DNA of 63,117 bases, the filler included, from Pelomyxa schiedti (Eukaryota; Protista; Evosea), in NCBI GenBank assembly GCA_020536535.1. It is 14 parts of 14 records of this genome, joined end to end, with 100 filler letters (N's around TTAATTAATTAA, not from the genome) between each part and the next. Parts side by side here need not be neighbours in the genome. Positions count along the whole stretch, not along the records: positions 12,223 to 44,198 come from JAHLWZ010000262.1; 13 more parts are not named here. One strand, 5' to 3'. Both the position numbers and the translations under genes were made by a program. Numbering within the stretch: position 1 is the first letter of the stretch; the number at the start of each line of letters is the position of its first letter. Shown piece after piece: positions 13,923 through 44,198 of the stretch. The notes under the pieces were generated by a model, which was given only the letters and a program-made list of their open reading frames with translations, did no database searches and was not told the origin of the DNA.

Positions 13923-13950
13923 CAATTTTCGTTTCTGATCAGACCAGTAA

Positions 13951-21251: not shown

Positions 21252-22224
21252 NNNNNNNNNNNNNNNNNNNNNNNNNNNNNNNNNNNNNNNNNNNNNNNNN
21301 NNNNNNNNNNNNNNNNNNNNNNNNNNNNNNNNNNNNNNNNNNNNNNNNNNNCCCTAAGAAATGTGGAGAGTGTAGTCGGTTTGCTCATGTAAGGACCAAC
21401 CACACAGAAACATTACATTACATAGGTACTTCGATGATTATATATCTAACATGTATGTATTCCTACCTCTACATATGATTTATTGAGCCTATTATTGTAA
21501 CAGAACAAAACTTGAGGGTGCTCTTTTGGAAAATATGGCTAAGAAAGGACATTCAGTTGCAAGTTCCGATAATGCCTTGGGACCCCAAGAGTTTGCCACT
21601 GCATGCCTGTAAAAAGGAGCAAACCTTAGAGGCTTTTGAGCTACAAATTCGAGTAAGACCAGCGTACATAAAATAATATGTGTACTTACTTGGGTTGGAA
21701 GTGGTGGGAGAAGGACTTACGTAATTTCTCAATTGCCGCTGCCTGATACTGGATCACAAGGAAACACGCGACCCACACGTTTTTGAGAACACCTGCACCA
21801 CAGTAAGCCCAAATCCTGGACTCACACCGCTAACCATCGTACACCAGTGCCACCACCGGCATAGTCGCGCCCTTGCCCCCGGTTTTTTTGATGAAAATGG
21901 TTTTTTTGGCTTCGCTTATAAAGACACTCCGCAACATTTCCTTTCCTTAAACTTTTTAACTCCGTTCCTTAAACGTTCCTTAAACTCATTAACTCCGTTG
22001 CCTAAACGCGCCGGAAACTCTACAAGCGGGAATAAAAATTGGTTTTATCCCCGGAGGAGGGTTGAAGGGCGATATTCGGTTTTTCATTCAACTTGGAAAC
22101 TATTTTTTTAGGGTTGTTCAAATAATTTTTTCTGCCCATCTTCAAAAAAAAAAAAAAAATACAAGCAAACAAAGAGGCAAACCCGACACCCAAAAAAAGG
22201 ACTCCTCCATAACGCAACAACGGA

Positions 22225-23677: not shown

Positions 23678-23994
23678 AACAAACAAAAAAACTTTCGGTG
23701 AAAAATAGTGAGCTGAATCAAAAAAACACCACGTTTCTAAAGTTTAGCTTCTGTTGGTGAATCGGGCGTAACAACAACAACAACGACAACAACAACGACG
23801 GGTTCCAGATGGTGGAGATTTGGAACGGCCAATGGAGTTTTCTCGAAAATATTAAACAATTTCTTTCTTTGCACCCCAGGGCTGTCTCTCCACCGAAGGT
23901 CATAAATATACAAATATCGTTGGAAGCGTGGCTTAGAGTCACTTGGGAGAAAACGATCGGGAGTCACCGCAACCAGTTTTACTGTGGGCACACA

Positions 23995-25400: not shown

Positions 25401-26593
25401 GCTTCCTTACTACAGCCGGATAATTCCCACTTGGATGATGATGCTTCCTTAGAGCCAGGCAATTCGACGTTGGATGAGGTGGAGTATGGTCCTGATGCAG
25501 AAGATCCCTTTTGGCCTCCAGATGAACCTCCTATTGTACCACTTGTAACACTGCTCAAAAAGAAGCTTCACAATACTTGACACCTGAAACTCCCTTTATT
25601 GAGGCTCCCCAAGTGCCTCTGCCTGTCCCACAGCCTCAAATGACATCAGCTGTCACACAACCACCTCAAATGACACCAGCTGTCACACAGCCACTTCAAA
25701 TCACACATGCCTCCCAGGTCCAGCTGCCCTTACAACTTGCCACAGTTCAGGCCTCTTCCTTAAGCAGTACAGTAATTCTGCATTGGCCGTCCCAAATCAG
25801 ATTGCTGTGATTTGTGTTGGATGTACCACACACCGTCAGTGAACTGGTGTTGGTTTCTGTGGTGTTTAGTACATGGTGCGTTTGTGATGAGAATGAGGCC
25901 TTCATTCTCAAAGGGCTCTGCCATTGGTATGCACTTTGTCTCCTGCTATTTAAGTTTGTTTTATTTCGTTTTCATATTCGTTTTCGTTTTTGTTTTGTTT
26001 GGTTTTGTTTTGTTTTTTATTCTTGTTCCCACATCCACAGGTCCATGAAGATAATGATGATGAGAAGCTGGCACTATGGTAGGTTTCCATTTATCTTCTC
26101 TGTTTTTCTTTTTCGACTTCACATTTGATAACCAGGTGGTGTTTTAGATGCTAGTTGAGAGGCAGACAGGAGCAGGGAGATCTGAAGGCAGAAGCGGGCA
26201 CGCACCCAGAAGAATGTGTGTGCAGCCCATTCGAGCAGTATTCCTCTTCTTCTTTGAGTTACCCAATATACTCAAGATCCTTTCCCGCACTCAACCTGTA
26301 TGTGAGAGTGCTGGCATCGGAGCCCACTGGTATGTTTCTTCTTTTCCTCGTTTCACCTTGTCCTACATGTACCATGGTAAATCACCCTCTCCCTTTTCAT
26401 CGTCACCCCACTCAAACATAATAGGTACCCTCTGACTGACGCCGCCCAGGAGAATGGTGTGCAGCTCTGCTCTGAGTTTTCACTTTCAGTGTCCCCCCTG
26501 TATGCCCTCACTTCCACTCCAATCCTAATAAGCCCGAGGCACTCCAACCTCAGAATCACGACTTAAACCTCATAAATCGAAACAACAAACAAA

Positions 26594-26730
26594 CAAGCAA
26601 CCATACGCTGATGTTGTCTTCTTGCTTGTTTCTGAAGTCTGAGAGTGTATTCGGCTCAGTGCTGGGCAATACTCATCATAAGTTGTTTTCAAGATTATCT
26701 GGATTGCACAGGAAACAGTGGTAGTCAGTG
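26594..26730. repeat. Diverged direct duplicate of 43903-44146
   Basis: Shared blocks AAGCAACCATAC...TTGTCTTCTTGCTTGTTTCTGAAGTCTG and AAGTTGTTTTCAAGATTATCTGG...CAGGAAACAGTGGTAGTCAGTGATTC. The 26.6-kb copy lacks roughly 110 bp of the middle. Confidence 0.85.
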
Positions 26731-26988
26731 ATTCTCAATTTTTTTGCGTCACTTTGGCCTAAACAGGACTTCTAAGAAGAGGGTTCTGTGAATGGCCATA
26801 ATTAGCAGCAACTTGGCGCCCAATCATCAAAAAACCGGGCTCCCTGTGGCGAGGTGTCGCGTATGATCAAGGGGAAGCGCTATTCTATTATTTTTATCTG
26901 TTGTTTAGCACCATAGCGACAATTAGTCACCATTAGTGCTTTAGCTCTTCAAAAGGCACTCGCCACACTCCCTTTCAAGGATTTTTTT

Positions 26989-28947
26989 TCATGAGATCAA
27001 CTTGGTGAGGTGGTTTGCTCGGTGCAGTGCTGCGTGCCTGGCATTCTCGGAGGGCTGCAAGCCCTGCCTCAGGTTTGCTCTGGCTACTACCTCATTGATG
27101 ATACTGCATGTCCTTTGTCCTGACTCGGTGTGCTTCAGATGTGTAGTTCTCCAGCAGGAAGAGGTCTTCAGCCTGCATGCCAATAGAGTGCAACTTTTTG
27201 AAGATTCGAAGAAGCAAAGGGGAGCTGGCTTCATTGCAACCAAAGACAGGAGAGAAGTTGCAGACAACAATGGGCTTGTAGCCAGCGTCTACGGCCGCGC
27301 GCACGTGAACGTCAACAAAATGCTCAAAGCTGCAGCTACCTGGCAGGCCCTCCGTGAGGGGGATTACGAAAATGACTGCATCCATGGGGCACTTGGGCTT
27401 CGTTGTTCTCAACCACATTGCTGGGTAAACGTCAACCTTCGGTGTGTTGTTGGGCACTAGGCCATTGAGGAAGTCCACAATCTTAAGCTTGGTGTAGGAT
27501 CCATCCGACACTCCCCATGTGTCCCAGAACTTCAGGTTCAACCTGTTGCCAATAAAACACCCAGGAGGATGGGAACCATCAACAAAGTCCTTCATGCTCC
27601 AGCTGGAGAATGCCTGTGTCCCATTGGAAGTTGTTGGAACTGCAGAAACCAGTGAGGAACTACTGGAAAAGAGAGACGCCATCCCATTGATCAGTGAGCC
27701 TGGTGGCCACCAACGTTGTTAGAGGAAATGAACACCAGGAGTAAGGACTAACTTTTTCCGCTTCCAGAAATTCCCCACAGCAATACATTCAGGGGCTTGT
27801 ATGTGAAGAAGTCCTTCAGCATCCAGCCTATCGGTTGGAATTGGCCACAAAAAAAGCTGACATTAATACATACTTAACGACGGCAAAATTCCAACACGGA
27901 AGTCTGCATATTCGTGGGTACTGAATTCCATGAAGAGTAGTTCAGGGCACCCAGTCTTCCCAGAAAGCGGCCTCTCATTTGGCATCAGATTCAGCTCACC
28001 AGCATATTCCCCACTGATAGGTTGGGGTATCACAACCTCCATGGGAGCAAAGTGCTTGCTTCCTTTAAAGTATACTTTTGCCCCCTGTGGCGGGGGTGAA
28101 AAGCTCAGTTCAGTTGAGCATAGCTCTTTCCATAGTAACTACCTGAGCAATAGAGCCTCGGCCAACAGGTTCCAGAGAAAACCTCAACGAGAGGGGATCT
28201 GATATGAATGTGAGTCCCGCATCATGATTGTGAAAGAACGTGAGCCTTGCTGGTGCATTTTGTCTTGTTCTAGAACGCAGTTCAAAGTGAGCTCTGCAGA
28301 ACGCTTGAACTGTAGGAAGCGCTGGGGTTGCGGTGCTCAAGAGTGCCCCATCAAGTGGCACATTGCAAAATACCGCATTGGGGATGACTTGCCCTCGGCA
28401 CTGCTCTAAGAGCGCGCTGACGGTGACTACGATGGGCTGCAGGCCCTTGGCCACCTGGCTGTGTGAGAGCATTTCGCAGAGGGCGCTGAAAGCATCCGAA
28501 AACGTTTTCTTTGGTCGAGGAGATGAAGGGGATATCCCTGTTGCAACCAAAAGTTAGTTTAAGGGTGTGCCGTAACTATCATTAACTATCCAGGGACACA
28601 ATGAGCTCCGCCTTATCAGCGGTGAAGGGACACAGAATTTGAAAGTAATCGCTGAAGCAGGTCACGCATACTGGCGCACCAGTCAAGGACTCGAGGAGCG
28701 CTCGCACCAAAGAGACATGTGAGTCTGCACGACTGAAGACCTCAACACTGTTCCACGGGTCCAGGGACCAAATTTCCGTGTCTGTAGCAGCAGAACCCCC
28801 TGGATCTAGGAGGGTAAGATGAGGAGCGGTGAGGGGACAGATGAGGGCTGTTCAACTTGTTGTCACTGGTCTGTTGTCCAACAACACTACAACACAACAC
28901 GAATGTTGTCCGAGCGGAAAGACCTCTGGTATCGGTTGGAGGTACAT
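26989..28947 (-). CDS. vWA - linker - IFI44-like GTPase protein (pair 2, divergent from giant gene B)
   Basis: Predicted MYLQPIPE...CCVVVLLD (vWA beta1), VCVTCFSDYFQILCPFT, TFSDAFSALCEML. Spliced Walker A PLNVLLWGISGSGK|SSLINGMASLF, FWDTWG, MDAVIFVIP, GYKPIVV, DLFLLENYTSE...KDMQY matching the IFI44 C-terminal NY..E...D motif. Confidence 0.78.
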
Positions 28948-29678
28948 GTTTGAGTTTATTTTTTTCCTTGATTGATCAAAGATACTTTGAGAATCAGACC
29001 CCAGTGCCAATACAGTACTTTGTCAGACAAAATCGGAAGGGATATTGGTTCTGATGAAATTAATTTGAAAGAGGGCAGTCCACACATACCTACGCAATTA
29101 GATGCACTTTGGCTGGGAGTAAAGAAGGTGGATATGTCAGAATCGTAACAGAAAGGTTCAGGACTCAGCCCAGCTGGAGTGGAGTTGTTGGAGGAAAGCA
29201 GAAACAGTGTGCCTGCTTATATGATGAAGGTCTACAACCACACATAAGAGGTTCGAAAATCAGGAACATATAAGTTGTCAAAAGTAGTAAAAAAAAAAAC
29301 CTTCCATGTATTTTCCTTTGAATTGGTATTTTGAAAATACATGGAAGGTTTTTTTTTTACTACTTTTTGCCTTGTAGTTGTCTGACATCTCTATTTTTTT
29401 GAAAAGTACAAGCTGAAACAAACCTTGCCTTGTGTAGGCATACAGGGCTTTTGGATTGTTGATTTCCACACATTTGTAACCACATTTCTTTGTGTATTCA
29501 GCACGCATCACAACTTCATTGGCTTTCGTTGAGAGTGGTTTTCGCTTGTCATGGAGTGTGGGTGGTCTTCACTCAAACAAAACCCTTCATTCCGCAGTAC
29601 CTCACACCGGTCAACCTTTTTTTTTGGCAGCTTAGGCAAACTGCAAGCTGCAAAAACAAAGAGGGTGAGCGCGACGGG

Positions 29679-32600
29679 ATGGCCACGGCCAGCGGAGCAC
29701 AGCCACCGCCTACGGCAAGCGTGGCGGGGGAGCTGCGGCGGGTGGTGCGACTGGCAGAGAGGCGGGCCGCGGGGGAGGACGTGGAGGCCGAGGGAGGCGA
29801 GGCGTGGCGGGCCCTGCGAGAGCTAGCAACGGCGGAGGGGCTCTGCACTCAGCAGGCGTCGTCTGTGCTGGACGAGTGCTCGGAGCTGTGGAGGGCGGCG
29901 CCGTCGCCGCTGAGGATGGACAGGCTGAGGGAGCGGCTCGGGGCCTTGAGGCGTATGCTGGTCCCGTTCGACGTGGAAGAGCTCCTGTCGCTACTAGAGA
30001 GGGCCGCCGAGGCCGCGAGGGCCGTGGAGGGGAAGAGCGTAGTCCTGGTGCTCGGCGGCACGGGGTGCGGCAAGTCCACAACCGTGCAGTACCTCTTCGG
30101 CGCGAGGATGGCGCTGAAAGACGTGCGCGTGGAGCAGGGCGTAGTGCCACACGTTTCCGTGGAAGGGAAGCCGCCACCAGAGCTGGAACACATCGTCGCC
30201 AGCTTCGAGGCTATGTCTGAGACCAGGCACGTCGCGGTGGTGGAAGTCAACCCCGACCTCCTTGTAGGGCTGCCAGGCCTGGACACGACGGACGACGGAA
30301 GCTGCGGCAACAGGTTGTTCCTGTGTGACACGCCAGGTTTTGGTGACAGCCGCGGCCCCGAGGTCGACGTGGCCAACGCCTTCGGGCTGGTCAAGGCCCT
30401 GCAAGGGTGCCACTCGGTTTGGCCCCTCCTGCTCGTTGAGTCGACAGACATCATGGCCGAGCGGCAGCAGAAACTTAGGCAGGTACTTGCGATGCTCGAG
30501 GATCTCATCCCCACGCTGGCTCCCTACGCCTGCTGCTTCTCCTTCGGTTTCACCAAGTTCTCTGCGGAGGACAGCGCCACGATCCGGGGCCAGCTCGAGA
30601 CCCTGCAGCGTGGCCTCGTCCAGGACTCGTCATCCGGAACCGGATTCAGGGTGATGCTCAACGAGATGCTGAAGCAGCACAGTGGGCGCATATCAAAGTG
30701 TCTGGTAATCAACCCCCTGGACAGGAACCCTCGCGAGGTTTACAGGAAGGTACTGGCACATCCGCCGATAAAAGAACCAACAGAGGTGTTCCGCATCTGC
30801 ATTCCCCCAAGTTCAAAGTCCGCCTTCAGCCAGCAGATGGAGACACAGCTGTGCTGTGTTACCAGAGCCATTCAGAGGGAAGAGTTCCTGCTTGTGAGGA
30901 CCTGGGTTACCAACCTGGAAAAACTCGTGATAGCTGCAGTAGGAGAGTGGGGAGAGGTAACGCACTGGCTGACCAGGTGCAAGGACGCAGCAAGGGAGCA
31001 GCTCCAAGAGAAGGTGAACGCTGGAGCCCAGCAAGCACGGAGGTACATGGACATCAGGTCAACGAAGCCCACAGCTGAGGACCTCGACTCGCTGGTGAGG
31101 TCTTACCAGTTTCTAGATCACTGCGACAGCATCCTTTCTGATGCTCTGGGTGACCAGAAGTTCTCTCTTCAACTCGAGAGGTGCCTCGAGGAACAGGTAC
31201 TTGAAGTGCTCCACGAAAGCCTGATGGAGGGTTATGACCCCCTGTCACAGGCAAACCAAGTGTGCCTGGAAAAGCTCTTGGCACTTTGCCCGCACTTCAG
31301 AACCGCCAGAGAAACGTACCACAAGATGGTTCCCAGGGTGCATGAGAGCCTGGCCTCTGAGGTGAGCAAAGTGAAATGCTCCGTTTCCTCTGGTGACTTC
31401 GCTGGGGCTGTGCTTGGTTCCAGGTTGCTGAAGGATACACTGGTGCGATTCGAGGCCCACGTGGAACCCACCGCCGCAACGCGCAGTATCGGCCAGATCG
31501 AGTCCCATTTCCTCACCCACCTGCGGGATGTGTTTCACACCACTGAGAGGTGCTGCTGCGTTGGGGCCCACTTTGATAAGGGGAGCGAGGAGCAACTCTC
31601 TCGGGGTTTGTCCGTTCTACAGGTCTGCATCGACGCCACTCACAACGTCAAAGAGCTGGCCCAGGTCTCGGAGCAGGCATCGGACCTGAAGGGACAGCTG
31701 GTGTTCCAGATCACGACACAGATGGAGAACCTCCACACGCAGATCACACAGCAAGAAATCAAGGGGAAGCTCGATTTCTCACGCTGCAGGCAGCAGTTCC
31801 TCACGATGAAGGTGCTCTGGTCCCTGCCTTTCACTCATGCTGCCGCTACTGGTACTGCTGCCTTCACTCCACTCCAGACAACTAAGGGTGGTATCAGACA
31901 GATTTACTCCAGAACACAGAGTTTCTTTGCCACACAGGTCCACAGCCTGGTGTCAGATTTTGTGGACACCTTCGACGGCTTGCACGCGGAAGAGTCTGTC
32001 GATCTGTCACCCTTGACCCGCCGTCTGAAGCAGCTGAAATTGAACGAGTGGCTTGAGGAAGCCATCCCTGGCTGTTGCACATCTGCCATGCGTGAAGTCG
32101 AAGACTGCCTCAAGGAGCATATGGAAAGCCATGGACGATGGTTGGATGACGTTCACCTCGATGTTGACTGCAACGCAGATTTAACACAGCTCACGCCAAC
32201 GCTTCTGTTTCTGGAGGCAGTCACCCCTCTTGAGGCAATCCCACTCGCAGCCGTAGTGGAGATGAAGAAAAAGCTTCTGGAGCGCATTAGAGGACTTCTT
32301 GGCGCTGTTCTAGACGGAATCCAGGACGCCTTCGACCTTGAGAAGCACTCCCTCTCGGCGCTGCTCTGCGAGGTCGAAAACCTGAGGGCCACGAAATCCA
32401 AGATGGAGGCTGGCAGCCCTGCCTATCTGTTCCTTGCAGAGAAGGGCTACCGAGATGTCAGAGAGCTCGAGCGCGCCATCGAAGACAACAAGGGTGCCCT
32501 GTCTGCCCTGGTAGGCCCGGCGGACCTGGTGGAATCCACAAATAAAATGGAGCTCCAGTTGAAGCGTTTCCGGGAGCTGCAGGCATCGTGGGTACTCACG

Positions 32601-35600
32601 CCCCAGCAGAGGCAGCTTCTCTTGGGGCTCAAAGTCACCAGCATCGTCCGGCTCGACAGGTGCATCGAGGAGAAAGTGCGGCGTTATGAGGCATTAGATA
32701 GGCAGGGCCTGCTTTACAACTTTGACCAAGTGGACCCGAACCACGTGGTGGACTCACTCTCTTTCATGAAGGTGCTATCGAAGGAGCTCCGCTGCGGGCT
32801 ATACAACGATCTCCATTGTACCCAGATCAAAAGAAGGATAGAGGAGTTCATGACTAGATACTGTGACACTCTGGCCCAAAGGGTGTCAAGGGGGCTTGAG
32901 AATATCTCAGACAACATCCATCATGACGTGCTGCTGAAAATCTCTGCAGATGATGTGGCAGCTCTCCTGGACCTGTTACCTGAACTGAAGGAGCTGGTGA
33001 GCAACCCCACCCTGAAGCAGTTCTTTCGCGGGCACAGCAGCATGGTTGAGGAGATCAAAGCCACCCTCTCACAGATTGCCTCTTATCTGGAGCACAACAG
33101 TGAGGTATCCGTCAAAGGCATCACAACAAAACTGGCAAATGTGTCCTCTCTCTGTCCTATGGAGACCATCCTCTGGTCTGACAGCCGTCCTTTCTCTCAA
33201 TTGAGGAGGGCACTCCTAGACCAGCAGCAAGAGCAGATAAAACACAGTGCCAGAGAAGTATTTGTAGCACTGGAAAAAGACAGGTGGATGGAAGTGGGGC
33301 AATGCCTATCCGAAATCTGTGAAAGTGGAAGCCAAGCAACCATTCGGAGTTCCATGGCGCAAGTGAACACCCAGCTTCAGAGGTACTGTAATGATCTGAA
33401 AATACAAGTTTCTCAGCTCTCTCCAGAGGTCTCAGACCAGTGGTTTTCCCTGCTTTCTAACATTGGCTCTTGTCTAGACAAGTTGAAAATGGCGGTTGAA
33501 GTTCTATCAACATGCAGGTTGCCACATGACACGCCTTCAAGCTGCAGGCCAGACCCCACATCCCAGCACAGACTTGTGAAAGACATTGAGCTGGAGTGTT
33601 CTAAGTCCATTCTCAGTGCCATGGCATCCCTGGTGAGCCTTGTCTGGAAGTGTCAGTACACAGAGGCTCTGACGAAGGTGGAAATCGTCAAAAAAGCTCA
33701 GAAAGCCATTAGATCGCACCTCTCGGAAGAGGCTTCACACAGTGTTGACGATTTTGAAGTCTCCCTTCGTGCTTCGTTCCAAAGTCTGATTGACCATTAC
33801 AAATCTGTGAAGATAGTCTGTTATCATCAGATTTTTTCTCCAAAGCTTGTCTTCAAACAACTCAGTCCCACATTCTCCTCCAGCATGCTATGCAAAGAAA
33901 ACTGGGAAGCAATCGAGGATGCCATCAAGCACAGATTTCATGTTGACATTGCACAGATACAAGAAATGCAAGCTCCCTTTGAACAAAAGCAAAAATTACT
34001 GAGAGAGGTTGCTCCTTTGCACTTTCTCCCTGAAACCCTCAGTTCTCCACTTGAGAAGGAGATTTCACAGATAACTGCCTCGTTGGATGCAGAGCACAAT
34101 AGGTTGATAACTGAAAAGTTGTCAGCCTTTGAAAATGAAGATCCCCCTGAAATTTTACGAATTTGGAACACGTTACTAAGAGGAGAAGGAAGAAGTGGGC
34201 CGATGGTCCAAAATATGGAAGTGGAGATAGATAAGATATTAAGAACGATGTGTACTTTCGCAGTGACTTCTTTCTCCAGTGGTAACTTCACAGTTAGTTT
34301 TCAGAATATTAAAAAAGTATTTACACTCTCTGAGCTTCAAAGTGATATTTCAAGTATTCACATCCCAATTGATGATATGTGCTTATCTGTGCATAAGTCT
34401 CTAGAAAAGACTTTCTCTTTCTTCTCAGATCAAACTCTTTCAGTTGAACTGGATTCTACCCTTAGTGATGCCCTGGCACAAATAATTGAGCTCCACAAAG
34501 TCTGGCAGTCGTATTCTGATTTACCTGACTTTTTGAGGATCCTTATTGGCTCAGATTTCACACAGAGAGTGAATAACACAATGGAGAGCATTGGTGCCTA
34601 TTTAAGAAAACTTGAAGGGGACCTAAATTCCTGCCTGTCGTCCTTTGATGTTACTCACCTCCAAACTGTTCTGGATCGGGTTCATTCCATTCCTTTCTTT
34701 TCAACTCTTTGTCACCAAGTTGTACCTTCATTATCTTGGAAGGATTTCTATTCCTTCTGCTTGGAGAAAGTGCATGACACCCTTGAATCTGTCCGGGCCT
34801 TTATCTTGGAAGTGGAAATTTGTAATCCTTCAATATCATACCTAGATAAGGGAAGCCTTGTGTGCCAACCCATTAAGTCAAGGCTCAACTTTCTAAAACA
34901 TTTATGGACACTAAAAATTAAACACCAAGACCTTAGATTAACACCAAAAATAATTGAAGAACAAACAAGCATAGTTTTTGGTAAGATAACCAACATTTCT
35001 CAGTGCATGATTGGCATTGTAAAGGAGTATAAGCTTACAGTAAGGTTCGAGGATAAACTTGTAGCTTCAAAACTATTTCACAGCTATTTCACCAGCTTGA
35101 GGATATATGCAGAGCAGCTGGAGGAACCTTTTTGTGCATTCATACAAATGAGTGTCAATGAAGTTAAGAGAAATCTATGGGCTTTAATTGAATCTGGGAA
35201 AAAAAACCTGCAAATGCTATCAGATGTATCCAGAGTTGCAGAAGAACTCATTGCCCTTAAACAAACTGGTGAACATCTATTCTATTCTGAAGAGGTAACA
35301 ATTTTCATTGAAGCCTTCATTCAGGAGTTCAAACAACGCCATTGCAGCCTATATAAACTAGGGTGTGCATTAATTGGTGATAACTCTGGCATGGGTATTG
35401 TGGTTGCACACGACTCTTCCAGTTTGAAGGCCTTTCTCCCCCACACCAGAGTTTTTGCTCCTGAAACAAGAAGTATGGAATACATTCTTACAAAACTAGA
35501 AGGAGAGGATATTGACTCCACTCAAATTGCACAGCTTTTAGTAAAGTTTGATTCTACATACTCTAATCTACGGAGGATGTTTCTTGTGGCTGATTTAGAG

Positions 35601-38084
35601 ACAAGCCAGAGATCTGTAATCAAACTGATAAAGAATTTCTCTTTGACTACTGAGCAAAATCTCGGAGTGCCTAAAGTAGATAGGCAATGCACAGGAGAAA
35701 TGACTGATAGCCTTCCAGAACTTCTTGCACACATATTCATGCTGTGGACTCTGTCTCACGCGGGGAACTACTTTGAGATTGCCAGTTTCGTGATAGATGA
35801 CAATGACAAGGACAAATACCTGTACATTCCACACCCAGCGCAGGTTGTGGCTATACTTCGGATGCTCGGAGTTGGCTACAAAAGCAACACCAAAGTAAAG
35901 TCAGTACCGGGGCTGATCAAGAACATCATTCAGTTGCAGACAGAGGAGGGCAAGTCGGTGGTGCTTGGTGTGGTGAGCATCGTGCTGGCACTTTACGGGA
36001 TGCAAGTGACCTGTGCGTGCTATTCGTCGGACCTGTGTGAAAGGGACTGGTCAGATTTCAAGCACATGTTTTCTCTGCTGGATGTGGACCTTTACATTCA
36101 GCATGGAACGTTCGACGTTCTGTGTGAGGCAGTACTTAACAAGAATGGTGACCTGAGGGAAGGGATCAAGAGGCTCATAACTGAAGGAATATGGCCGGTG
36201 AGGGTGGAAGGTCCTGCCGAAAGGCCACACGTTCTGCTTGTGGATGAGATTGACGTGTTCTTCAACAAGGACTTCTACGGCAACGTGTACTCGCTATCCT
36301 CGCCGCTACAGGACCCGTGCATCATGCGGCTCACGGACTTCATCTGGGAAAGCAGGGCAACTGTAACAGCGGAGCAGGTGCAGGCCACGCCAGCATATAA
36401 GCAATGCGTCACCAAGCTCGGCGATTGGTCGTTCCTTGTGGATTCTGCGGTGGCCGACATGCTGCTGGCACTCAAGACATACTCGTCACACGACTACATT
36501 GTCAGCGACGGCAAGATCGGATACAAGGAACAGGATGGCGTGTCGTTCTCGGTTGTGTTTGGGTACAACACTCTGTTTGCGTATTATCACGAGGTGGACC
36601 AGGGTAACATCACCAGACCCACTCTTGAGCTGAACGTCGGCCTCATTGTGCGTGCCGGCTCGTTCTCTTATGCTGAGCTTCCAAAGAAGTTCTCGTGCAT
36701 CATGGGTGTGACTGGGACCCTTGAGCACCTCAGCCCAGTTGAGAAGGAAATCATGAGGGAGACCTACGGCATCGCAAAGGAGACTTACATCCCCTCCGTC
36801 TATGGCGAAACCCACAGGACGTTTGCTCTGAATCGGGACATCAAGATCGTTGAGAAGGAACGCCATTTCGCCGAGATCTCCGCTGAGATCAAGAGCCGCA
36901 TCCAGGGGCGCACCCCTGGCACATCCAGGGCTGTGCTTGTGTTCTTTGAGTCCAGGAAGGTACTCATGGAATTCTACCGCCTCGAGCACACAAAGTTTGT
37001 CATTCCCTTCAAAATCATCACTGAGGAGGGGAGTAGGATGCAGAGGAAGGCGCTCCTCAACAGTCCATGCCGGCCTGGGCATGTCCTCTTATTGACCTCT
37101 AGTTTGGGTCTCAGACTGGAATTTTCTTCATTTGCCAACTATGGTTTGCATGTAATCCAGACTTTTTTGTATGAAAACTGGGCTACTGAAGAACAAATTA
37201 TCAGAAGAGCAACTCACTTCTACTCAGAGGTTTCCTTCAGCATTGTATTACTGGATGAGAGTCTCCAAAGAATGGGCATGGGCCCAGCTGAGGTGCAATC
37301 AATAAGAAACTCAGAAGCTATCTACAGCACATTGATGAAGTATAGATGCCACTTCTACAACAGGGCTTGCACAGAAAATAGTAAATTCCTCGGTATCGCC
37401 TTGGTTGAGCACACTGAATTGCAGGAATTTGTTCATAGTCTCTACATAACTCAAAATTCTGAAACAGCCAAGTCGCACTTACAACAAAAGAACATCAGCA
37501 TCAACAAACACCGGAGTATCCTTGTGTGCCCAAAAGTCAAGACTCAAAAAGATCCCCCACTTGGGCAAATATGTACACTGTTACCACCAACCAAATCCCC
37601 CCTTGTTACCAAATTTCAACCAGTAATGAATAGAGTTATTATTTTGATGGTAGATGCCTCCAATAGTGCTGTTCTTGAGGATATTAAAAATTCTTTGATC
37701 TTATTTCTACTGGAGAGCCTTGAGGGAGTACTGATATGTATTATTTCTTTTTCAGAGGGTGCATACATACAGTGCCCCTTTACAAGGATTAAAACTGAAC
37801 TGATAAGTGCTACCCAAGCCAAAGACTTTTGTCACACTAAGGGAAAAGTGAATGTACTTGCAGCTTTTGAAAAGGCAAAAGCTTCAATCAGAAGCATTCC
37901 CACTGAATTTTTTTCACCATGCTTTTTTTTCATATTATCTTGTTGTGATGCCAAGATAGGTACAGACCTACAGAAGATAAAATCCCTTGTAACACATCTC
38001 TCTTTCTATCAACAGACTTTTCTAACTTATCCAGATACCTGCACAAGCGACCCTTACAGGCATTTTTCTTGGCTCCTCATCTGA
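29679..38084 (+). CDS. Giant protein B: P-loop GTPase - helical region - degenerate SecA-like helicase - vWA (2,801-aa unspliced ORF; probably extends by splicing to about 39427)
   Basis: Paralogue of A throughout: GGTGCGKSTT, LCDTPGF, VDEIDVFF, GVTGTL, VLVFFE. Walker A reads QTEEGKS and motif VI is lost. C-terminal vWA IILMVDASNS...ISFSEGAYIQCPFT. Confidence 0.88.
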   Translation: MATASGAQPPPTASVAGELRRVVRLAERRAAGEDVEAEGGEAWRALRELATAEGLCTQQASSVLDECSELWRAAPSPLRMDRLRERLGALRRMLVPFDVEELLSLLERAAEAARAVEGKSVVLVLGGTGCGKSTTVQYLFGARMALKDVRVEQGVVPHVSVEGKPPPELEHIVASFEAMSETRHVAVVEVNPDLLVGLPGLDTTDDGSCGNRLFLCDTPGFGDSRGPEVDVANAFGLVKALQGCHSVWPLLLVESTDIMAERQQKLRQVLAMLEDLIPTLAPYACCFSFGFTKFSAEDSATIRGQLETLQRGLVQDSSSGTGFRVMLNEMLKQHSGRISKCLVINPLDRNPREVYRKVLAHPPIKEPTEVFRICIPPSSKSAFSQQMETQLCCVTRAIQREEFLLVRTWVTNLEKLVIAAVGEWGEVTHWLTRCKDAAREQLQEKVNAGAQQARRYMDIRSTKPTAEDLDSLVRSYQFLDHCDSILSDALGDQKFSLQLERCLEEQVLEVLHESLMEGYDPLSQANQVCLEKLLALCPHFRTARETYHKMVPRVHESLASEVSKVKCSVSSGDFAGAVLGSRLLKDTLVRFEAHVEPTAATRSIGQIESHFLTHLRDVFHTTERCCCVGAHFDKGSEEQLSRGLSVLQVCIDATHNVKELAQVSEQASDLKGQLVFQITTQMENLHTQITQQEIKGKLDFSRCRQQFLTMKVLWSLPFTHAAATGTAAFTPLQTTKGGIRQIYSRTQSFFATQVHSLVSDFVDTFDGLHAEESVDLSPLTRRLKQLKLNEWLEEAIPGCCTSAMREVEDCLKEHMESHGRWLDDVHLDVDCNADLTQLTPTLLFLEAVTPLEAIPLAAVVEMKKKLLERIRGLLGAVLDGIQDAFDLEKHSLSALLCEVENLRATKSKMEAGSPAYLFLAEKGYRDVRELERAIEDNKGALSALVGPADLVESTNKMELQLKRFRELQASWVLTPQQRQLLLGLKVTSIVRLDRCIEEKVRRYEALDRQGLLYNFDQVDPNHVVDSLSFMKVLSKELRCGLYNDLHCTQIKRRIEEFMTRYCDTLAQRVSRGLENISDNIHHDVLLKISADDVAALLDLLPELKELVSNPTLKQFFRGHSSMVEEIKATLSQIASYLEHNSEVSVKGITTKLANVSSLCPMETILWSDSRPFSQLRRALLDQQQEQIKHSAREVFVALEKDRWMEVGQCLSEICESGSQATIRSSMAQVNTQLQRYCNDLKIQVSQLSPEVSDQWFSLLSNIGSCLDKLKMAVEVLSTCRLPHDTPSSCRPDPTSQHRLVKDIELECSKSILSAMASLVSLVWKCQYTEALTKVEIVKKAQKAIRSHLSEEASHSVDDFEVSLRASFQSLIDHYKSVKIVCYHQIFSPKLVFKQLSPTFSSSMLCKENWEAIEDAIKHRFHVDIAQIQEMQAPFEQKQKLLREVAPLHFLPETLSSPLEKEISQITASLDAEHNRLITEKLSAFENEDPPEILRIWNTLLRGEGRSGPMVQNMEVEIDKILRTMCTFAVTSFSSGNFTVSFQNIKKVFTLSELQSDISSIHIPIDDMCLSVHKSLEKTFSFFSDQTLSVELDSTLSDALAQIIELHKVWQSYSDLPDFLRILIGSDFTQRVNNTMESIGAYLRKLEGDLNSCLSSFDVTHLQTVLDRVHSIPFFSTLCHQVVPSLSWKDFYSFCLEKVHDTLESVRAFILEVEICNPSISYLDKGSLVCQPIKSRLNFLKHLWTLKIKHQDLRLTPKIIEEQTSIVFGKITNISQCMIGIVKEYKLTVRFEDKLVASKLFHSYFTSLRIYAEQLEEPFCAFIQMSVNEVKRNLWALIESGKKNLQMLSDVSRVAEELIALKQTGEHLFYSEEVTIFIEAFIQEFKQRHCSLYKLGCALIGDNSGMGIVVAHDSSSLKAFLPHTRVFAPETRSMEYILTKLEGEDIDSTQIAQLLVKFDSTYSNLRRMFLVADLETSQRSVIKLIKNFSLTTEQNLGVPKVDRQCTGEMTDSLPELLAHIFMLWTLSHAGNYFEIASFVIDDNDKDKYLYIPHPAQVVAILRMLGVGYKSNTKVKSVPGLIKNIIQLQTEEGKSVVLGVVSIVLALYGMQVTCACYSSDLCERDWSDFKHMFSLLDVDLYIQHGTFDVLCEAVLNKNGDLREGIKRLITEGIWPVRVEGPAERPHVLLVDEIDVFFNKDFYGNVYSLSSPLQDPCIMRLTDFIWESRATVTAEQVQATPAYKQCVTKLGDWSFLVDSAVADMLLALKTYSSHDYIVSDGKIGYKEQDGVSFSVVFGYNTLFAYYHEVDQGNITRPTLELNVGLIVRAGSFSYAELPKKFSCIMGVTGTLEHLSPVEKEIMRETYGIAKETYIPSVYGETHRTFALNRDIKIVEKERHFAEISAEIKSRIQGRTPGTSRAVLVFFESRKVLMEFYRLEHTKFVIPFKIITEEGSRMQRKALLNSPCRPGHVLLLTSSLGLRLEFSSFANYGLHVIQTFLYENWATEEQIIRRATHFYSEVSFSIVLLDESLQRMGMGPAEVQSIRNSEAIYSTLMKYRCHFYNRACTENSKFLGIALVEHTELQEFVHSLYITQNSETAKSHLQQKNISINKHRSILVCPKVKTQKDPPLGQICTLLPPTKSPLVTKFQPVMNRVIILMVDASNSAVLEDIKNSLILFLLESLEGVLICIISFSEGAYIQCPFTRIKTELISATQAKDFCHTKGKVNVLAAFEKAKASIRSIPTEFFSPCFFFILSCCDAKIGTDLQKIKSLVTHLSFYQQTFLTYPDTCTSDPYRHFSWLLI

Positions 38085-39427
38085 ACTTGAAATTCTCCAA
38101 AGTACACTTTCCCCACACCCAGTGTTCAAAAGGAATGACTACTTTGCCTTGCGTCACCATCTATTTGAGATAAAGCAGATTAACTGCCCATTGGAAGTAG
38201 TTTTCTGCCAAGGTATAAGTGGAGAGCTGCAGAAATCGACAGCTCCACTGCACCTTGCCATGTCAGTCTTCCCAACTGCAACAAGTCAAAATCTATCCGA
38301 GGTATGTATCTTTGAGAGTCTCCATCCTAGCTCTAACTACTAAAAGGGGGTCATCTCTTTTCAAGCACCAGGAAACTCTGAATATTATCATTCTTCCCCA
38401 GTCCCTATTGACAAAGGAATAAATCACACCAGTCCTTTCCAATCTCTAGTGAGTTTTGCTCCAACACCAAATGCCGCCAACAAGCTACTTCCTATCCCTG
38501 AGTTTATCTACTTCCAAGTCATGATTAATAGCTTTTGGTACACTGGACATACATCTCTGAATCATGGTAGGAACTGTATCTGTGGTTTTTTTTTTAACTC
38601 AAAGTCAGCCTGGTTTGCTGGTGACTTTCTTGCGGAAGAACTTACAGGAGGACCACTCAATATTATGGTATGGGGAGGACAGGGCTCAGGAAAATCTAGT
38701 TTCTTGAATGGGCTAGCAACTTCTTTTGGATTTACAGAACATGTTTTATCTCCACTGCCAGTGCACCCTTTTCCCTGCCCTGATTCAACAATGTACACAA
38801 GACATTCCATTTGGAGCCTGCAGACCTACATCGACGGCGGGGCACCGCTATTGCGGGAAATCAACATTCAGTTTTGGGATCCTTGGGGTTGGGAGCAAGA
38901 TAGTCTGGTCCCATTTGTTTCCGGGCTTGTTGACGTCGGAACTTCACAGCCACAGTTCCTCTTAAAACCCAAGAATCTCTTGCAGCAATCCCCAGATAGA
39001 ATAATTGACGAAATAATTTTGGTTGTCCCACTTTCAACAGCACTGGACAACATGAGTTATTTAGAAAACCAAGTCCAAGAAGCTCAGAACCTTGGTACAG
39101 TTTGAGCTCATATCCTTTGTTTGATAATAAAATTAGGCCTGCACCCAGTCATTGTATTCAGCTTTGTCGACCAGGTACGACAAGAAGAAGTTCAAAGCCG
39201 TGTCAAAAGAATCCTTGCTAGTCTCCACACTACTTCTGGGGATACATTTGTTCTGGCAAACTATGTCAATGAAGAAAGGAAGAGCTGGCAGAAAGACTCC
39301 CAGTACTGGTCAGTGTTGCACAGAGCGCTTCTTCATGCCACCAACTATCGTAAGTTCAAACACCCACTCTTTGGGTGCTTGTGAAATTGGCCTCCAACCA
39401 GGTTTTCAAAAAGGGCGAAGCCATTAA
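38035..39427 (+). CDS. vWA C-half, linker and IFI44-like GTPase exons; predicted spliced continuation of giant gene B
   Basis: IPAQATLTGIFLGS...FKRNDYFALRHHLF aligns with the vWA C-half of 40237-40917. LNIMVWGGQGSGKSSFLNGLATSF, QFWDPWG, IIDEIILVVP, LHPVIVFSFVD, TFVLANYVNEERKSWQKDSQYWSVLHRALLHA follow (IFI44-like). Confidence 0.75.
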
Positions 39428-40236
39428 TGTGTGGCAATTTTCGAAAAGAAGCACCCTGAAAAAGAAGGGGTCAACCTCCCACATAATTTTCTCTATTCCA
39501 CGAAATACAGGGAGAATACAAAGCCTGTAAGTGCTGTTCCATCGAGTGCGTTCGTTATTTATCAGCATAACCAACAGTCTAACAAATACCGAGTGGCGGC
39601 CTGGGGACACACTCCCAACTAAGCAACACCCTCTAATGCTCCATAAGTAACAACACAAGTGATTTGGAACTTCCAGTCTGTTTGGTACTTCTAAATATGT
39701 GTTGCACTTCCACAGTCACCAAGATTCCACATATCTGAATGATGCAAACTGGTTTGTTGGGCACAGCCGCTTTCAGCTACAGCCCATACGAATACAGGAA
39801 AAGAAATCAAATGTACTCACTATTTTACGAGTCTCCTCTGCTTTTTCTAGAATCATAGATTCATAGCATTTTTTTATATACTCCTGCTGTCTAACCATCA
39901 GCCTCAGAGGTCTCATTGCTCTTATTAAGAAAAGTAAACGACTACAATAACAATAAACCTCAAAATTCGTTCGTTTGCTTCTATCTGCAATTGTGTTTAG
40001 TGCATGGCTCCGAGAACAGCTAGGTCGTGGCACTATAGCTACCATGATGTGGATTACACTGTATTGACATCAAGTTTCTTCACACCGAATTCGTCTTGTT
40101 TCCCAAGAAACTTGTTCCCGGCCAACACCAGTCAAAACGCTTGAATAACGACCCTGATTTCACACTCATTTCCTTTTTTTTCTTCACAGTCGAACGGCAC
40201 TGGCTCATCAGTGTGCTTCAAAAAAAAAGTGTGGCA

Positions 40237-40936
40237 ATGGCACATCCCTTGTTGCACACCTTGGGGCCCACAATCGACAAGTCACTTCTCGTAGTTCTTG
40301 TCGATGTCAGCACTAGTGTCCAGACCATTAGTTCGTTCCTCCGAGCCGTTTTGGCCCAGGCAGCTGCTACTTGTAATTGGGAAATTATCGAGTATAACAC
40401 TGAAGCCAGGAGAGTCTGCACGTTCACAAATAGCTCAGAGAAGGTGCTTCTAGCAATTCAAGGATTCCATCAAATACCAGCAAGCTCTGACGGTGGTCCC
40501 AACCTTGCTGCCGCACTCAATATGGCGTCCTCTGTGGTTCTAAAAGCACCACCTCTAGCGAACATTGCTGTAATTATTATCACAGGAAGCCAGTTGTCTC
40601 CATCAGTCTCCATACCTTATAATAATCTGAGACAGTGGTTGATTCCACCACCTGCGATATTTGTGGTAACTGTTGGACCACTACCCATGGAGGGAACTGT
40701 TCGTTCCTCCTTACCTGGAGCCAGATACTTTAGACTTCAAAATTACCCCACCCTCTTGCCCTACCTGTTTACAGCCATGGGTTCTGGCAACACAGCCGAG
40801 CTGATGGATATCTCATTTTCACAACTTCCGTGTGCTCTTCAGAGGTTCACTGACCCAGTGTCACTGGCCGTTACCATCCGACCTCACTCTGTGCTTGGAA
40901 CAGTGCCCACGGTATGAGCCACCCCTGTGTGCTGCC
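40237..40936 (+). CDS. Fourth vWA paralogue (5' exon of another vWA-IFI44-like gene; continues into gap)
   Basis: LLVVLVDVSTS (intact DxSxS), WEIIEYNTEARRVCTFT, GPNLAAALNMA, VIIITGS, AIFVVTVG. The 3' 121 bp are shared with 13217-13337. Confidence 0.75.
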
Positions 40937-41036
40937 NNNNNNNNNNNNNNNNNNNNNNNNNNNNNNNNNNNNNNNNNNNNNNNNNNNNNNNNNNNNNNNN
41001 NNNNNNNNNNNNNNNNNNNNNNNNNNNNNNNNNNNN

Positions 41037-42438
41037 TCGGGACATCAAGATCGTTGAGAAGGAACGCCATTTCGCCGAGATCTCCGCTGAGATCAAGAGC
41101 CGCATCCAGGGGCGCACCCCTGGCACATCCAGGGCTGTGCTTGTGTTCTTTGAGTCCCGGGAGACCCTCCTCAACTATTACCGCCTCGAGCAGATCAACT
41201 TTGTCACTCCCTTCAACATCCTCACTGAGACAGCAAACGAAAAGGAGAAGCGAGACCTGATCAAGATGGCGAGCCGACCCGAGCAGGTAACGTTGCTGAC
41301 TCGTTGTTTTGGCCGAGGCACGGATTTCATATCCTACAGCTCGACAGTGAACGCTAATGGAGGTGTGCACGTAATTCAGACATTTTTGTCTGAGGAGCGA
41401 TCTGAGGAAGTTCAGATCATTGGCAGAACAGCTCGGCAGGGACAGGAGGGCTCGTTTAGCATGGTCCTGCTTGATGAGGATTTGGAGAAATACGACCTGC
41501 GGGCACCAGAGATAAAGGGTATACGAGACTCTGGGATTTACCATGATACCCTGGACAAGCACAGGAATGCGTTCTTTGACAGAACCTATGAAGAAAACAC
41601 CAGGTTCATCGGCGTAGCCTTGGCTGAACACAACAACTCGTTGGAGTTTGTAAACAGCCTCTTCACAGCAAACCTGGCCTCAGTCAGGACCTTCTTGGGA
41701 GAGAGAAACAAGAAGCCTGTTGTTGTCAACTCTCGCACCATTGTCTTGATGGATGCCACAGGGTCAATGAGCTCACTCCTGCAAAAGGTGAAAAATACAG
41801 TGGGCACTATGTTTGAAAGGGCCATGGCCATTCTTGAAGAGAACTCATGCAATCGGAACTGCTTCCAGCTTCAGTTTGTCGTGTACCGCGACTATGACTG
41901 TGGTGTTGACGATGTTCTGCAGACATCGTCGTGGACTTCCAATCCAGTGGAACTTCGCGACTTCATGGACAAGATAGTGGCGAAGGGTGGAGCTGACTGG
42001 GAGGAGGCCGTCGAACTGGGCCTGTGGCATGCAAATGAAGAGGCCAAGAAGATGCCAATCTCTCAGGTGATACTTATTGCTGACGCTCCAGCCAAGACCG
42101 TTGCCCAAATCACTGATTACCGCAACAGCTATGGTGGGGAGGGCATGTGGTGCAGGTCCAAGTTTGGTGCTGCCACACACTGGGAGGAACAAGCTCTCGC
42201 ACTCAATTCCCGTGGCGTGCATGTGCACTGCTTCTATATAGACAACAGGGTGGCCGAAAACTTCGGCAAGATCGCGGCTGTGGGTGGTGGACAGTGTGCT
42301 CTCTTGAACGTGAACGCTGCCTCTGGCGCTGACGATCTTACGAATTGTGTCACACAGGTAATCCTGGGGGATGTTGGACACCAGTCTGGTAAGGGAGACA
42401 CATTCATCGAGCAGTACAAGCTCAAGTATCACCTTTGA
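41037..42438 (+). CDS. C-terminal part of a giant protein (probably A): intact SecA-like helicase C-lobe plus vWA with MIDAS
   Basis: VLVFFES, LLTRCFGRGTDF, GGVHVIQTF, QIIGRTARQGQEGS. vWA IVLMDATGSM...FVVYRDYD...GGADWEEAVELGL...ILIADAP. The first 121 bp are identical to 36833-36953. Confidence 0.85.
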
Positions 42439-42946
42439 TTATCGGTCGAGACTTGTCGCGTTAAGCGAAATTTTATTTTTTAACTATTTGCACGATACAG
42501 AGGGGGTTTATAAGGTGGGTCGGTTGGCTGGTGCCTGTTAGCTTGAACTCGCTGGTTTCCGTGAATGGCCATAATTAGTCGGCTAATCATCACACCAAGA
42601 TTCCCTTAATCCTTCGCCCATCACTCCTCACATAACGAACCGAATTTTTCCTTTTTGATTCTAAAACGGAGTGCGAGAACACCACCGAGATACTACACAC
42701 ACGAAGCACAACAATCACTACATTGTGTAGTGGGTGAGAGGAAAGGAGTGGGAGAACGAGGGAGAACGCCGGAGAAGGAGGAGGTTTATATTTCCGGGTA
42801 ACCCGGAATTACTATGATTACAGTAATAATAATAATAGTGGCGTGAATAGTAGTGGTAGTAGTAATATATGTTGGTGATATTATTATATTAGGAGTAGAA
42901 GTAGTAGTAGTAGCCGGCGAATAGTAAGTAGTAGTAGTAGTCCTCT

Positions 42947-43756
42947 CTAATAATGTGCTGCCCTAGCACAGCGCCATTGTGGGACAGCAGCAGCAGCAGC
43001 AGCAGGTTGTTGCTGTGGAGGCAATATAGCTTGCTGGTAGCGCGGTGGTGGAACATACAGCAACGGTTGTGATGATGGTGATGAGGGAGTGCGTGGCACA
43101 CGTTGCTGTTGTTGTTGTTGTGCAGGAACAGTGGTGGGATGTGCTGATGATGGCGGGATAGCATGCACATACTGTGATTGCTGTGATTGCCGGTATTGTT
43201 GTGATCCTGCATGTTGCTGCTGTAGGTGTGGAGCTGTGTGCCTTGTTGGCGGTGCTGACTGATGCGACGGTTGTGGTGGTGATACAACCTGGTGGGATTG
43301 ACCCCGTTGTTGCATCAGGGGAACAGCTGGCTATGTGGTGTGTGTATTGCGGAACCCAAGAGATACTTATTGAGGTGATGGTGGTGGTGGTTCCTGGTGT
43401 GGTCTTAGTTGTTGCACTTGTGTGTGCACAACAGGGTGATGAGGTGGTGAAGAGGTTCCCCTTGGTGCTGTCGGATAGCTGTTTGGGAGATTGCGTCGGC
43501 TTATGATACTGCTGTTGCTGGCAGTTCTGGCACATCCCTTGATAAAGTTGTTGCAGCAACTGTGATTGAACCTGGGGTGCATCAGCAGCTCCCTGCTGCT
43601 GTACCACATTGTTAAGTGCAAGGTGGTGGTGGGGGTGTGGTGATGACAGTGGGCCGTGCTGCTGTCCTTGGAACTGGCAAAGTGTTGAGGGCCTGTGTTT
43701 GTGCTCGTGGCTGTCGTTGGGGTTGGGTCGCTGGGTCCGCTGCTGTTGTTGTTGTG

Positions 43757-43814
<58 letters not shown>

Positions 43815-44198
43815 ACGGCTGTGTCTATGGTGGTTGTGGTGGAGGTTCCGACTGTGGTCTTCTTGACCATGCTGTTCAGGCTAAGAGTCAGCAGTGTAAG
43901 AAGCAACCATACACTGGTGTTGTCTTCTTGCTTGTTTCTGAAGTCTGGGACTATATTCGGTTCCTTGCTCCATGCTTTGCTCTGCCGTCCTTTTGGAGTA
44001 GCTGAGCTTGATCTGATGAGTGTTGCTTCTGGTGCCAACCACCTTAGTTATAATGTGTCCTGGGCATGACTCAGCCAAAGTTGTTTTCAAGATTATCTGG
44101 GAGCTGCCTGGACTGGACAGGAAACAGTGGTAGTCAGTGATTCCAGAGAACTTCAGAAAAGAAATGCTTTTTGGGGTTTCAGGGACTTCCAAGTGAGC
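42947..44198 (-). CDS. Low-complexity Gln/Pro/Thr/Asn-rich protein (multi-exon, 5' truncated), includes (TTGCTG)n microsatellite near 43760-43810
   Basis: Frames reading QQQQQQRVP...YVPPPRYQQ and SNSNSNSN. Frame assignment between exons uncertain. Confidence 0.45.

Follow-up and report, generated by a model that had tools for sequence, protein, structure and literature searches.

A giant GTPase-helicase gene fused in frame to a vWA/IFI44-like GTPase module in the amoeba Pelomyxa schiedti

Introduction

IFI44 and IFI44L are prominent interferon-stimulated genes, and their biochemical mechanism in vertebrates is poorly understood. Here we describe gene B of Pelomyxa schiedti, an anaerobic amoeba that to our knowledge has no interferon system, in which a giant GTPase-helicase reading frame runs on into a von Willebrand factor A (vWA) domain, a beta-sandwich and a GTPase that resembles IFI44 in its predicted fold. 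The gene lies on scaffold JAHLWZ010000262.1 of assembly GCA_020536535.1; all positions refer to the window, the whole 63,117-nt stretch of DNA analysed, in which this scaffold occupies 12,223-44,198. The fusion is real and lineage-specific, and its gene model is public yet undiscussed in the literature we searched, where we found no description of the giant family, of amoebozoan vWA/IFI44-like proteins or of this fusion. The P. schiedti genome paper makes no mention of helicases (PMC8887013).

The body of B belongs with giant proteins of 2,000-3,500 aa found in ciliates, bdelloid rotifers, Hydra, Reticulomyxa, Arcella and Hexamita, which are annotated as 'helicase carboxy-terminal domain protein' (Tetrahymena), 'SecA family profile domain-containing protein' (rotifer, Blepharisma) or LOC136085801 (Hydra) and share 35-44% identity with B over the helicase. 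Their architecture consists of a variable N-terminus, a GTPase, a long helical region, a SecA-like helicase and a variable C-terminal domain, which can be VWA_4, VWA, U-box, C2 or AAA. B has the N-terminal GTPase, a helical region of ~1,700 aa and the SecA_DEAD and P-loop_SecA lobes in the same order, whereas its C-terminal slot holds a whole vWA/IFI44-like gene instead of VWA_4, VWA, U-box or C2. The match of these two Pfam models to the motor lobes is a feature in common with the bacterial SecA preprotein translocase ATPase. However, B scores below the Pfam thresholds, has no preprotein-binding or C-terminal translocase domains and stands in a cytosolic eukaryotic giant context, and we therefore do not count it among the SecA translocases.

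The tail of B resembles amoebozoan vWA-GTPases, which are free-standing (~500-770 aa) or carry C-terminal zinc ribbons; none of them sits on a giant helicase. Compared with this family, the B copy has a 5-residue deletion after G3 and changes at the HVT and NFxN positions. Like IFI44, the tail has G1 (GxxxxGKS) and G3 (DxxG) motifs; unlike IFI44, which lacks a vWA domain, its module has one in front and ends a 3176-aa protein.

The locus thus shows an IFI44-type G domain, as judged from structure models, in Amoebozoa with a vWA domain in front, and in one species such a module captured by a giant GTPase-helicase whose family is patchily distributed and extends to Legionella-like bacteria. Should the physical link have functional meaning, it would offer a candidate partner and an experimentally tractable architecture, in which a pseudo-helicase scaffold carries a GTPase as its output. 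Otherwise, the locus remains a clean, RNA-supported case of two genes fused, presumably through deletion, within a cluster of rearranging paralogues. In addition, it flags errors in the public gene models of the scaffold.

Results

Gene B encodes one spliced reading frame of 3176 codons

An open reading frame (ORF) extends over 29490-38084 and ends, unspliced, at a stop codon at 38082-38084. Splicing extends it, from the ATG at 29679, to 3176 aa and a TGA stop at 39382-39384. The original prediction of a protein of more than 3,000 aa with a GTPase, a dead helicase, a vWA domain and a second GTPase is thereby confirmed at the level of the reading frame, and the in-frame fusion to the IFI44-like module stands as well; its end is moved from 39427 to the stop codon, and three further introns are newly delimited. 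From the N-terminus, B comprises a GTPase, a long helical region, a SecA-like helicase with dead motifs, a vWA domain, a beta-sandwich and the IFI44-type GTPase. The gene is laid out as follows.

29679-39384, + strand: giant gene B, from the ORF and spliced contigs
29679-37988, + strand: exon 1, intronless, 8.3 kb coding from the first ATG
37506-37625, + strand: fusion junction; last giant-type residues KHRSILV (37506-37526), then 33 codons without homologue
37626-37988, + strand: captured vWA, first part; in-frame ATG start MNRVIILMVDASNS (37626), intact metal ion-dependent adhesion site (MIDAS; DASNS), CPFT at 37767-37784
37989-38034, + strand: intron 1, 46 nt, phase 0, GTAACA...TATCCAG, with a CTAAC branch-like site
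38035-38301, + strand: exon 2, remainder of the vWA and beginning of the beta-sandwich
38302-38346, + strand: intron 2, 45 nt, phase 0
38347-38566, + strand: exon 3, beta-sandwich linker domain
38567-38608, + strand: intron 3, 42 nt, phase 1; joints in RNA runs X3 and X4
38609-39094, + strand: exon 4, first part of the IFI44-type G domain; G1 GGQGSGKSS (38674-38700), G3 WDPWG (38872-38889)
39095-39136, + strand: intron 4, 42 nt, phase 1, specific to B; joints in X3 and X4
39137-39384, + strand: coding part of exon 5, end of the G domain, stop TGA at 39382-39384
39385-39477, + strand: 3' untranslated region; RNA contig and depth end at ~39477

The giant-type sequence of B can be followed up to the junction by comparison with a canonical giant C-terminus at 41037-42438. 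The two are 46% identical over 273 aa, and the match ends at KHRSILV in B and NSRTIVL in the fragment, the first strand of the canonical vWA_4 domain. From there B runs on as KHRSILVCPK and, after the 33 unmatched codons, which are possibly the former 5' leader of the captured gene, enters a vWA domain of another subtype, assigned by family alignment, AlphaFold2 model and vWA fold matches. Its CPFT motif is common to P0089 (Pelo_3380), P0087, P0094 (Pelo_17473) and P0092, and no stop codon separates the giant part from the vWA. The alignments thus bear out both the predicted point at which homology ends and the switch of vWA subtype.

All four introns are of the GT..AG type and keep the frame throughout. 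Removal of intron 1, which is specific to B and absent in P0087 and P0089, restores a family-conserved strand: KSL is followed across the joint by IPAQATLTGIFLGS, compared with LxPxPxIIGIGVG in the family, and the peptide over the joint of exons 1 and 2 reads ...KIKSLIPAQATL.... Introns 2 and 3 correspond in position and phase to introns 3 and 4 of P0089. P0087 has introns at both aligned positions; the first agrees with B intron 2 in position and phase, and the second was compared in position only. These common introns imply that the module was captured as genomic DNA from a family member.

The GenBank model P0001 ('helicase carboxy-terminal domain protein', 2661 aa), which was made independently and is the best database match to giant ORF B, is exactly residues 516-3176 of spliced B, and the fusion tail is therefore already part of the public annotation and not a new gene model. 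P0001 starts at 31224, and the 515 N-terminal codons (29679-31223) have no public gene call. We prefer the longer model because the missing 515 aa carry the GTPase domain common to 62 of the 85 other members of the giant family, our set of which comprises 86 proteins including B.

The junction is present in DNA and in spliced RNA

Four public runs from one sample (X1 to X4) hold the stretch and were used as Logan contigs (k=31), in which rare variants are dropped; contigs of X1 and X2 are DNA-like, and those of X3 and X4 are spliced RNA contigs. X3 yields one contig of 2379 nt without mismatches, made up of 36924-37988, 38035-38301, 38347-38566, 38609-39094 and 39137-39477. It joins the helicase region to the end of the IFI44-like module and is spliced over all four introns, including the predicted junctions at 37988/38035 and across 38300-38620. 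Depth in X3 drops to zero past ~39477, ~95 nt 3' of the stop codon. The joints of introns 3 and 4 were seen again in X4, in which loose ends at 37988 and 38035 spell the adjoining exon and confirm intron 1. This 46-nt phase-0 intron, predicted to bypass the stop at 38082-38084, is hence removed in the transcript. We showed that the tail of B is transcribed over the junction and that its four introns are spliced. Among the contigs examined, from which rare variants drop out, we observed neither termination after 38084 nor intron retention nor a lack of support for the junction.

X1 and X2 contain an unspliced contig of 3922 nt (36924-40845, no mismatches) that crosses the intergenic region. In these DNA-like contigs the 37.5-kb junction appears in unspliced form, which shows that it exists in DNA too. 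A chimera of assembly or of multiple displacement amplification at 37520 is ruled out as the whole explanation by its occurrence in both DNA-like and spliced RNA contigs.

The in-frame ATG at 37626 immediately precedes the first vWA strand; P0094 likewise begins there, with MVILVD. The module might accordingly be made mainly from its own start, by a shorter transcript begun within the 3' part of B, with the fusion minor or untranslated, and RNA depth would suit this idea (18.6 over the tail versus 6.7 over the B-specific patch 36000-36186, which was found in X3). Such depths equally fit the 3' bias of the Smart-seq2 libraries (PMC8887013), the X3 contig extends at least 700 nt upstream of the ATG through helicase coding sequence without a stop or break, and ribosomes translating B would run on into the module. 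We consider two separate products very unlikely.

At 38663, just 5' of the P-loop coding sequence, a low-depth X4 contig (3.95x) lacks one base; this is a frameshifted variant or else an error of assembly or sequencing.

The tail is a complete vWA/IFI44-type module

The tail aligns end to end, with the same domain order, with amoebozoan vWA/beta-sandwich/GTPase proteins (Dictyostelium DDB_G0292188, Q54DL7; Acytostelium XP_012750968; Pelomyxa Pelo_3380, Pelo_6043 and Pelo_17473). It shares with them the motifs LAWxAGDF, WGxxGSGKS, WDPWG and DNYxxE and keeps all invariant family columns (N, G, G, G, K, D, W, G, G, P, I, N, Y, D), and a profile search with the module family (hmmsearch) matched the tail of B at 2e-99. 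With exon 4 as query, phmmer searched 1.84 billion representatives exhaustively and gave 17 matches in all. Most of those scanned have an N-terminal vWA and a P-loop domain near residue 300, and the ten whose source was looked up came from Pelomyxa, Acytostelium, Nematostelium or the environment; none of these ten was annotated as IFI44. An Atlas feature search for a link to IFI44 gave a weak lead only (0.88).

The resemblance to IFI44 emerged at the level of predicted structure. An AlphaFold2 model of the whole module (predicted local distance difference test, pLDDT, 77.6) matched Dictyostelium Q54DL7 first (E 5.8e-27) and then five IFI44 or IFI44L proteins. The G domain modelled alone (pLDDT 82.7, predicted template modelling score 0.85) was compared with AFDB Swiss-Prot by Foldseek: Q54DL7 led with a template modelling score (TM) of 0.81, and ranks 2-6 were all IFI44 or IFI44L. 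Against the human, chimpanzee and mouse proteins, TM by query was 0.73-0.77 (E ~1e-12), and the domain aligned over its full length, query 3-245 against IFI44 155-423. Other GTPases scored E 1e-6 or weaker with TM of at most 0.52; in the PDB, the nearest were IRG, mitofusin or GIMAP-type GTPases (E 6e-6 or weaker), and the whole-module search there matched vWA domains only. These models justify calling the predicted tail G domain IFI44-type at the fold level, not at the sequence level. In the whole-module fold search, the beta-sandwich 5' of the G domain aligns to IFI44 from about residue 48-62, with a whole-module TM below 0.5. Pfam gave no TLDc match in the tail and nothing above curated cut-offs for the G domain and beta-sandwich, and PADLOC and NCBIfam gave no usable match for B or its tail.

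The module has other fusion partners as well. In P0094 (Pelo_17473, 1698 aa), the vWA/IFI44-like GTPase is followed by a long helical stretch, another vWA and a protein kinase. The P. schiedti genome seems to use the module as a mobile building block.

The giant body carries a decayed helicase

29946-30926, + strand: N-terminal TRAFAC-type GTPase; G1 GGTGCGKST (30054-30080), G3 DTPG (30321-30347)
35796-37526, + strand: SecA-like superfamily 2 helicase core with decayed motifs; weak Pfam SecA_DEAD match
35928-35957, + strand: motif I, QTEEGKS (family consensus GTGEGKS)
36234-36263, + strand: motif II, DEID (family consensus DEVD)
37092-37124, + strand: motif V, LGLRLEF (family consensus FGRGTDF)
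37194-37223, + strand: motif VI, RRATHFY (family consensus GRTARQG)

The N-terminal GTPase, by blastp common to the 62 family members mentioned above, gave nothing above curated cut-offs in Pfam, NCBIfam and PADLOC scans of B; in the relatives P0006 and P0012, MMR_HSR1 is above the Pfam threshold. In the helicase, motif II is kept and motifs I, V and VI are destroyed, whereas all four are nearly invariant in aligned relatives, and giant paralogue A and the 41037 fragment keep every motif within their coverage. Judging by these alignments, B is a giant-family member by descent and is likely to be catalytically degenerate.

Over 7-8 kb, the giant ORFs A and B (14242-21251 and 29679-37988) have no introns, while the 1.4-kb module attached to B contains four; the genome as a whole has 7.4 introns per gene (PMC8887013). 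Such a pattern would be consistent with horizontal transfer or retroposition as the route by which the giant family was acquired. Legionella fallonii lfa2470, 'SecA DEAD-like', is listed among eukaryote-like genes (PMC4256840) and probably belongs to the giant family.

Two further relatives, with 39% identity, lie on compact bacterial-looking contigs (L003, 230-14140; L004, 811-13601). One of these contigs has 29% GC and encodes LptF/LptG and PLA1; the other encodes ankyrin and patatin proteins. Downstream of both giants come a conserved protein of ~185 aa and then one of 1,000-1,300 aa, whose L003 copy begins with a GTPase homologous to the giants' N-terminal GTPase.

Identical tracts separate the body of B from its tail

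36224-36953, + strand: 730-nt tract identical to A and its presumed C-terminal fragment; a gene-conversion tract or collapsed repeat

A and B are 37% identical over 1,999 aligned codons with saturated synonymous sites (proportion of synonymous differences, pS, 0.72-0.87 over this pair and the two helicase C-termini; Nei-Gojobori), which marks them, on sequence grounds, as old paralogues. In spite of this, 35699-35860 and 36224-36953 of B are 100% identical to A or the 41037 fragment (20397-21251, 41037-41157), and the sequence of A runs on identical to B 36224-36953 (20405-20742, 21079-21251 and 41037-41157 compared). Between the identical tracts lies the B-specific stretch 35867-36222, which holds dead motif I. 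Identical tracts in otherwise saturated paralogues point to recent gene conversion between giants or to a collapsed assembly. An 800-nt Logan contig over 36157-36953 agrees with A at 36197-36222 and has a depth close to that of both copies added together, from which we likewise conclude that the cluster is gene-converting or that the tracts collapsed in assembly. In X1-X3 contigs, 36197-36222 encodes PIKMTDTAVQ, as in A, instead of the window's PVRVEGPAE; the B version was probably popped as a bubble.

The link from the body of B (before 36224) to its tail (after 36953) hence crosses a 730-nt perfect repeat, at which the Logan contig breaks (36924-36953) and which k=31 contigs cannot phase. 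This raises the alternative that the fusion tail (from 36954) belongs to body A and the canonical tail 41037-42438 to B, with a variant in which the tail is a partial, truncated duplicate that lacks a complete giant body. The identity of the tract in both copies, the A-version contig with its summed depth and the joins made by an RNA scaffolder at repeats in this scaffold would allow it. The original assembly was, however, built with k up to 121, read pairs and Nanopore reads (PMC8887013), and 21352-40936 contains no gap. Dead motifs sit both in the body patch of B (I) and on the tail side (V and VI), and because it is simplest to assign the body with dead motif I to the tail with dead V and VI, and the intact body A to the tail with intact motifs, parsimony favours the arrangement of the window. 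We regard mispairing as highly improbable. Either pairing leaves ~190 codons of giant-type helicase fused to the module, since the tail contig itself carries them.

Origin and likely role of the chimera

We favour as probable the reading that B is a genuine P. schiedti chimera, formed by deletion or recombination, transcribed and spliced, which serves as a nucleotide-switch scaffold in a conflict or immunity gene cluster. A deletion or illegitimate recombination at the DNA level would have taken B's own vWA_4 domain from its first strand onward and would thereby have placed the leader and start of a tandem vWA/beta-sandwich/IFI44-type GTPase gene on the same strand in frame behind the giant ORF. 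The captured gene would have kept its own introns, two of them old and common with paralogues. The pseudo-helicase and long helical body might then act as a binding or sensing platform, with the vWA and IFI44-type GTPase as the interaction and output end, in what is probably a fast-evolving cluster of cell-autonomous conflict or immunity genes. By analogy, a role as a GTP-switch scaffold in a conflict-type gene family seems most likely, given the immune role of IFI44, the patchy, transfer-prone distribution of the family and its variable C-terminal slot.

Several points weigh against this reading. Besides the RNA depth and the repeat between body and tail described above, family-conserved positions are kept at 63% in the tail of B and at 67% in free-standing P0089; a hidden Markov model of the IFI44-like part matched 1 of the 86 giant-family proteins, B alone; Nei-Gojobori dN/dS is uninformative for A versus B and the two helicase C-termini owing to saturation; and the 3176-aa product is a prediction from DNA and RNA. 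A dead helicase together with a tail conserved at 63% may possibly reflect decay instead of a new function.

The extreme form of this argument holds that B is a young, functionless chimera, a transcribed accident of a rearranging, gene-converting cluster that is becoming a pseudogene and whose ORF is open through recency. The loss of three nearly invariant motifs, the position of its tail as the most divergent family member at conserved positions, an architecture unique among the 86 giants and the mosaic identical tracts and partial copies in the cluster all agree with it. On the other hand, the ORF of 3176 codons is intact with four in-frame introns correctly spliced, and the age of A and B implies that the 1,900-aa body of B has long been open. 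Moreover, both GTPase P-loops, both DxxG motifs, the vWA MIDAS and all invariant family columns are kept, and the sister P0089 is about equally divergent, so that this divergence characterises the subtype rather than the fusion. On balance, we judge a functionless B unlikely.

The fusion is weak evidence that the two families act together

The original prediction had taken the fusion to imply joint action of the two families. The physical fusion holds; the functional partnership does not follow from it, since the module is found in 1 of 86 giants and in a paralogue whose helicase motifs have decayed. The Rosetta-stone argument rests on one locus because the 85 other giants have no module and other vWA-GTPase loci have no giant: none lies within 10 kb of the vWA-GTPase genes in Acytostelium (L001) or Pelomyxa (L002), and a search for recurrence elsewhere showed that the two bacterial-looking giants have other neighbours. 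In the window, vWA-GTPase genes stand head to head with both A and B; these pairs are copies of one arrangement in one rearranging cluster and not independent evidence. Cooperation of the giant and vWA-GTPase families is thus possible and only weakly shown. A bolder proposal takes the fusion and the two head-to-head pairs as signs of a true partnership, in which giant GTPase-helicases and vWA/IFI44-type GTPases form a two-component cell-autonomous defence module in amoebae, with B as a pseudo-helicase adaptor or decoy that would hard-wire them together. We hold this to be quite unlikely; if true, it would give IFI44 a pre-metazoan origin and a concrete partner class.

Neighbouring genes and scaffold structure

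12225-13997, - strand: free-standing vWA/IFI44-like GTPase gene, head to head with giant A; cut by a gap and the piece edge
14242-21251, + strand: giant paralogue A, helicase motifs I and II intact; broken by scaffolder gaps
27092-28947, - strand: P0089 (Pelo_3380), free-standing vWA/IFI44-like GTPase, 532 aa, 5 introns, head to head with B
40237-40936, + strand: partial vWA gene
41037-42438, + strand: canonical giant C-terminus, motifs V and VI intact, vWA_4 domain

The P. schiedti genome is a single-cell SPAdes assembly of Illumina and Nanopore reads, scaffolded by P_RNA_scaffolder with Smart-seq2 RNA (PMC8887013). The scaffold contains four 100-N runs, starting at 13117, 20524, 21252 and 40937, which we attribute to RNA-scaffolder joins because of this procedure. 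At least one join has the same contig end on either side (20405-20523 equals 20624-20742), and with this 119-nt overlap of contig ends at 20524, gene A is probably contiguous through its 'gaps'. The canonical C-terminus at 41037-42438 is probably the displaced end of A, put elsewhere by the scaffolder; we dropped an earlier reading of it as a third giant gene 'C' at 41037 in favour of this one. The public record has a single 687-aa gene over 40237-42438 with VWA, P-loop_SecA and VWA_4 matches, which is almost certainly an artefact that joins the partial vWA gene and the giant C-terminus over the 100-N gap at 40937-41036.

Short inverted copies, 96% identical, tie the left and right ends of the scaffold (13217-13350 with 40799-40936, and 13951-14048 with 42480-42577). 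Both adjoin gaps or gene ends, which adds to the sequence evidence for rearrangement or repeat-driven scaffolding. A + strand vWA-GTPase gene just 3' of 42438 was ruled out; that region holds only the 98-nt inverted copy (96% identity) of 13951-14048, followed by low complexity. From 42700 to 44198 extends a long low-complexity stretch that reads as poly-V, poly-C, poly-L or poly-Q by frame and contains several mechanical ORFs on both strands without a recognisable gene. Between P0089 (-) and B (+), the 731-nt divergent intergenic region contains an imperfect palindrome of 88 nt (29280-29367) that is 83% self-complementary.

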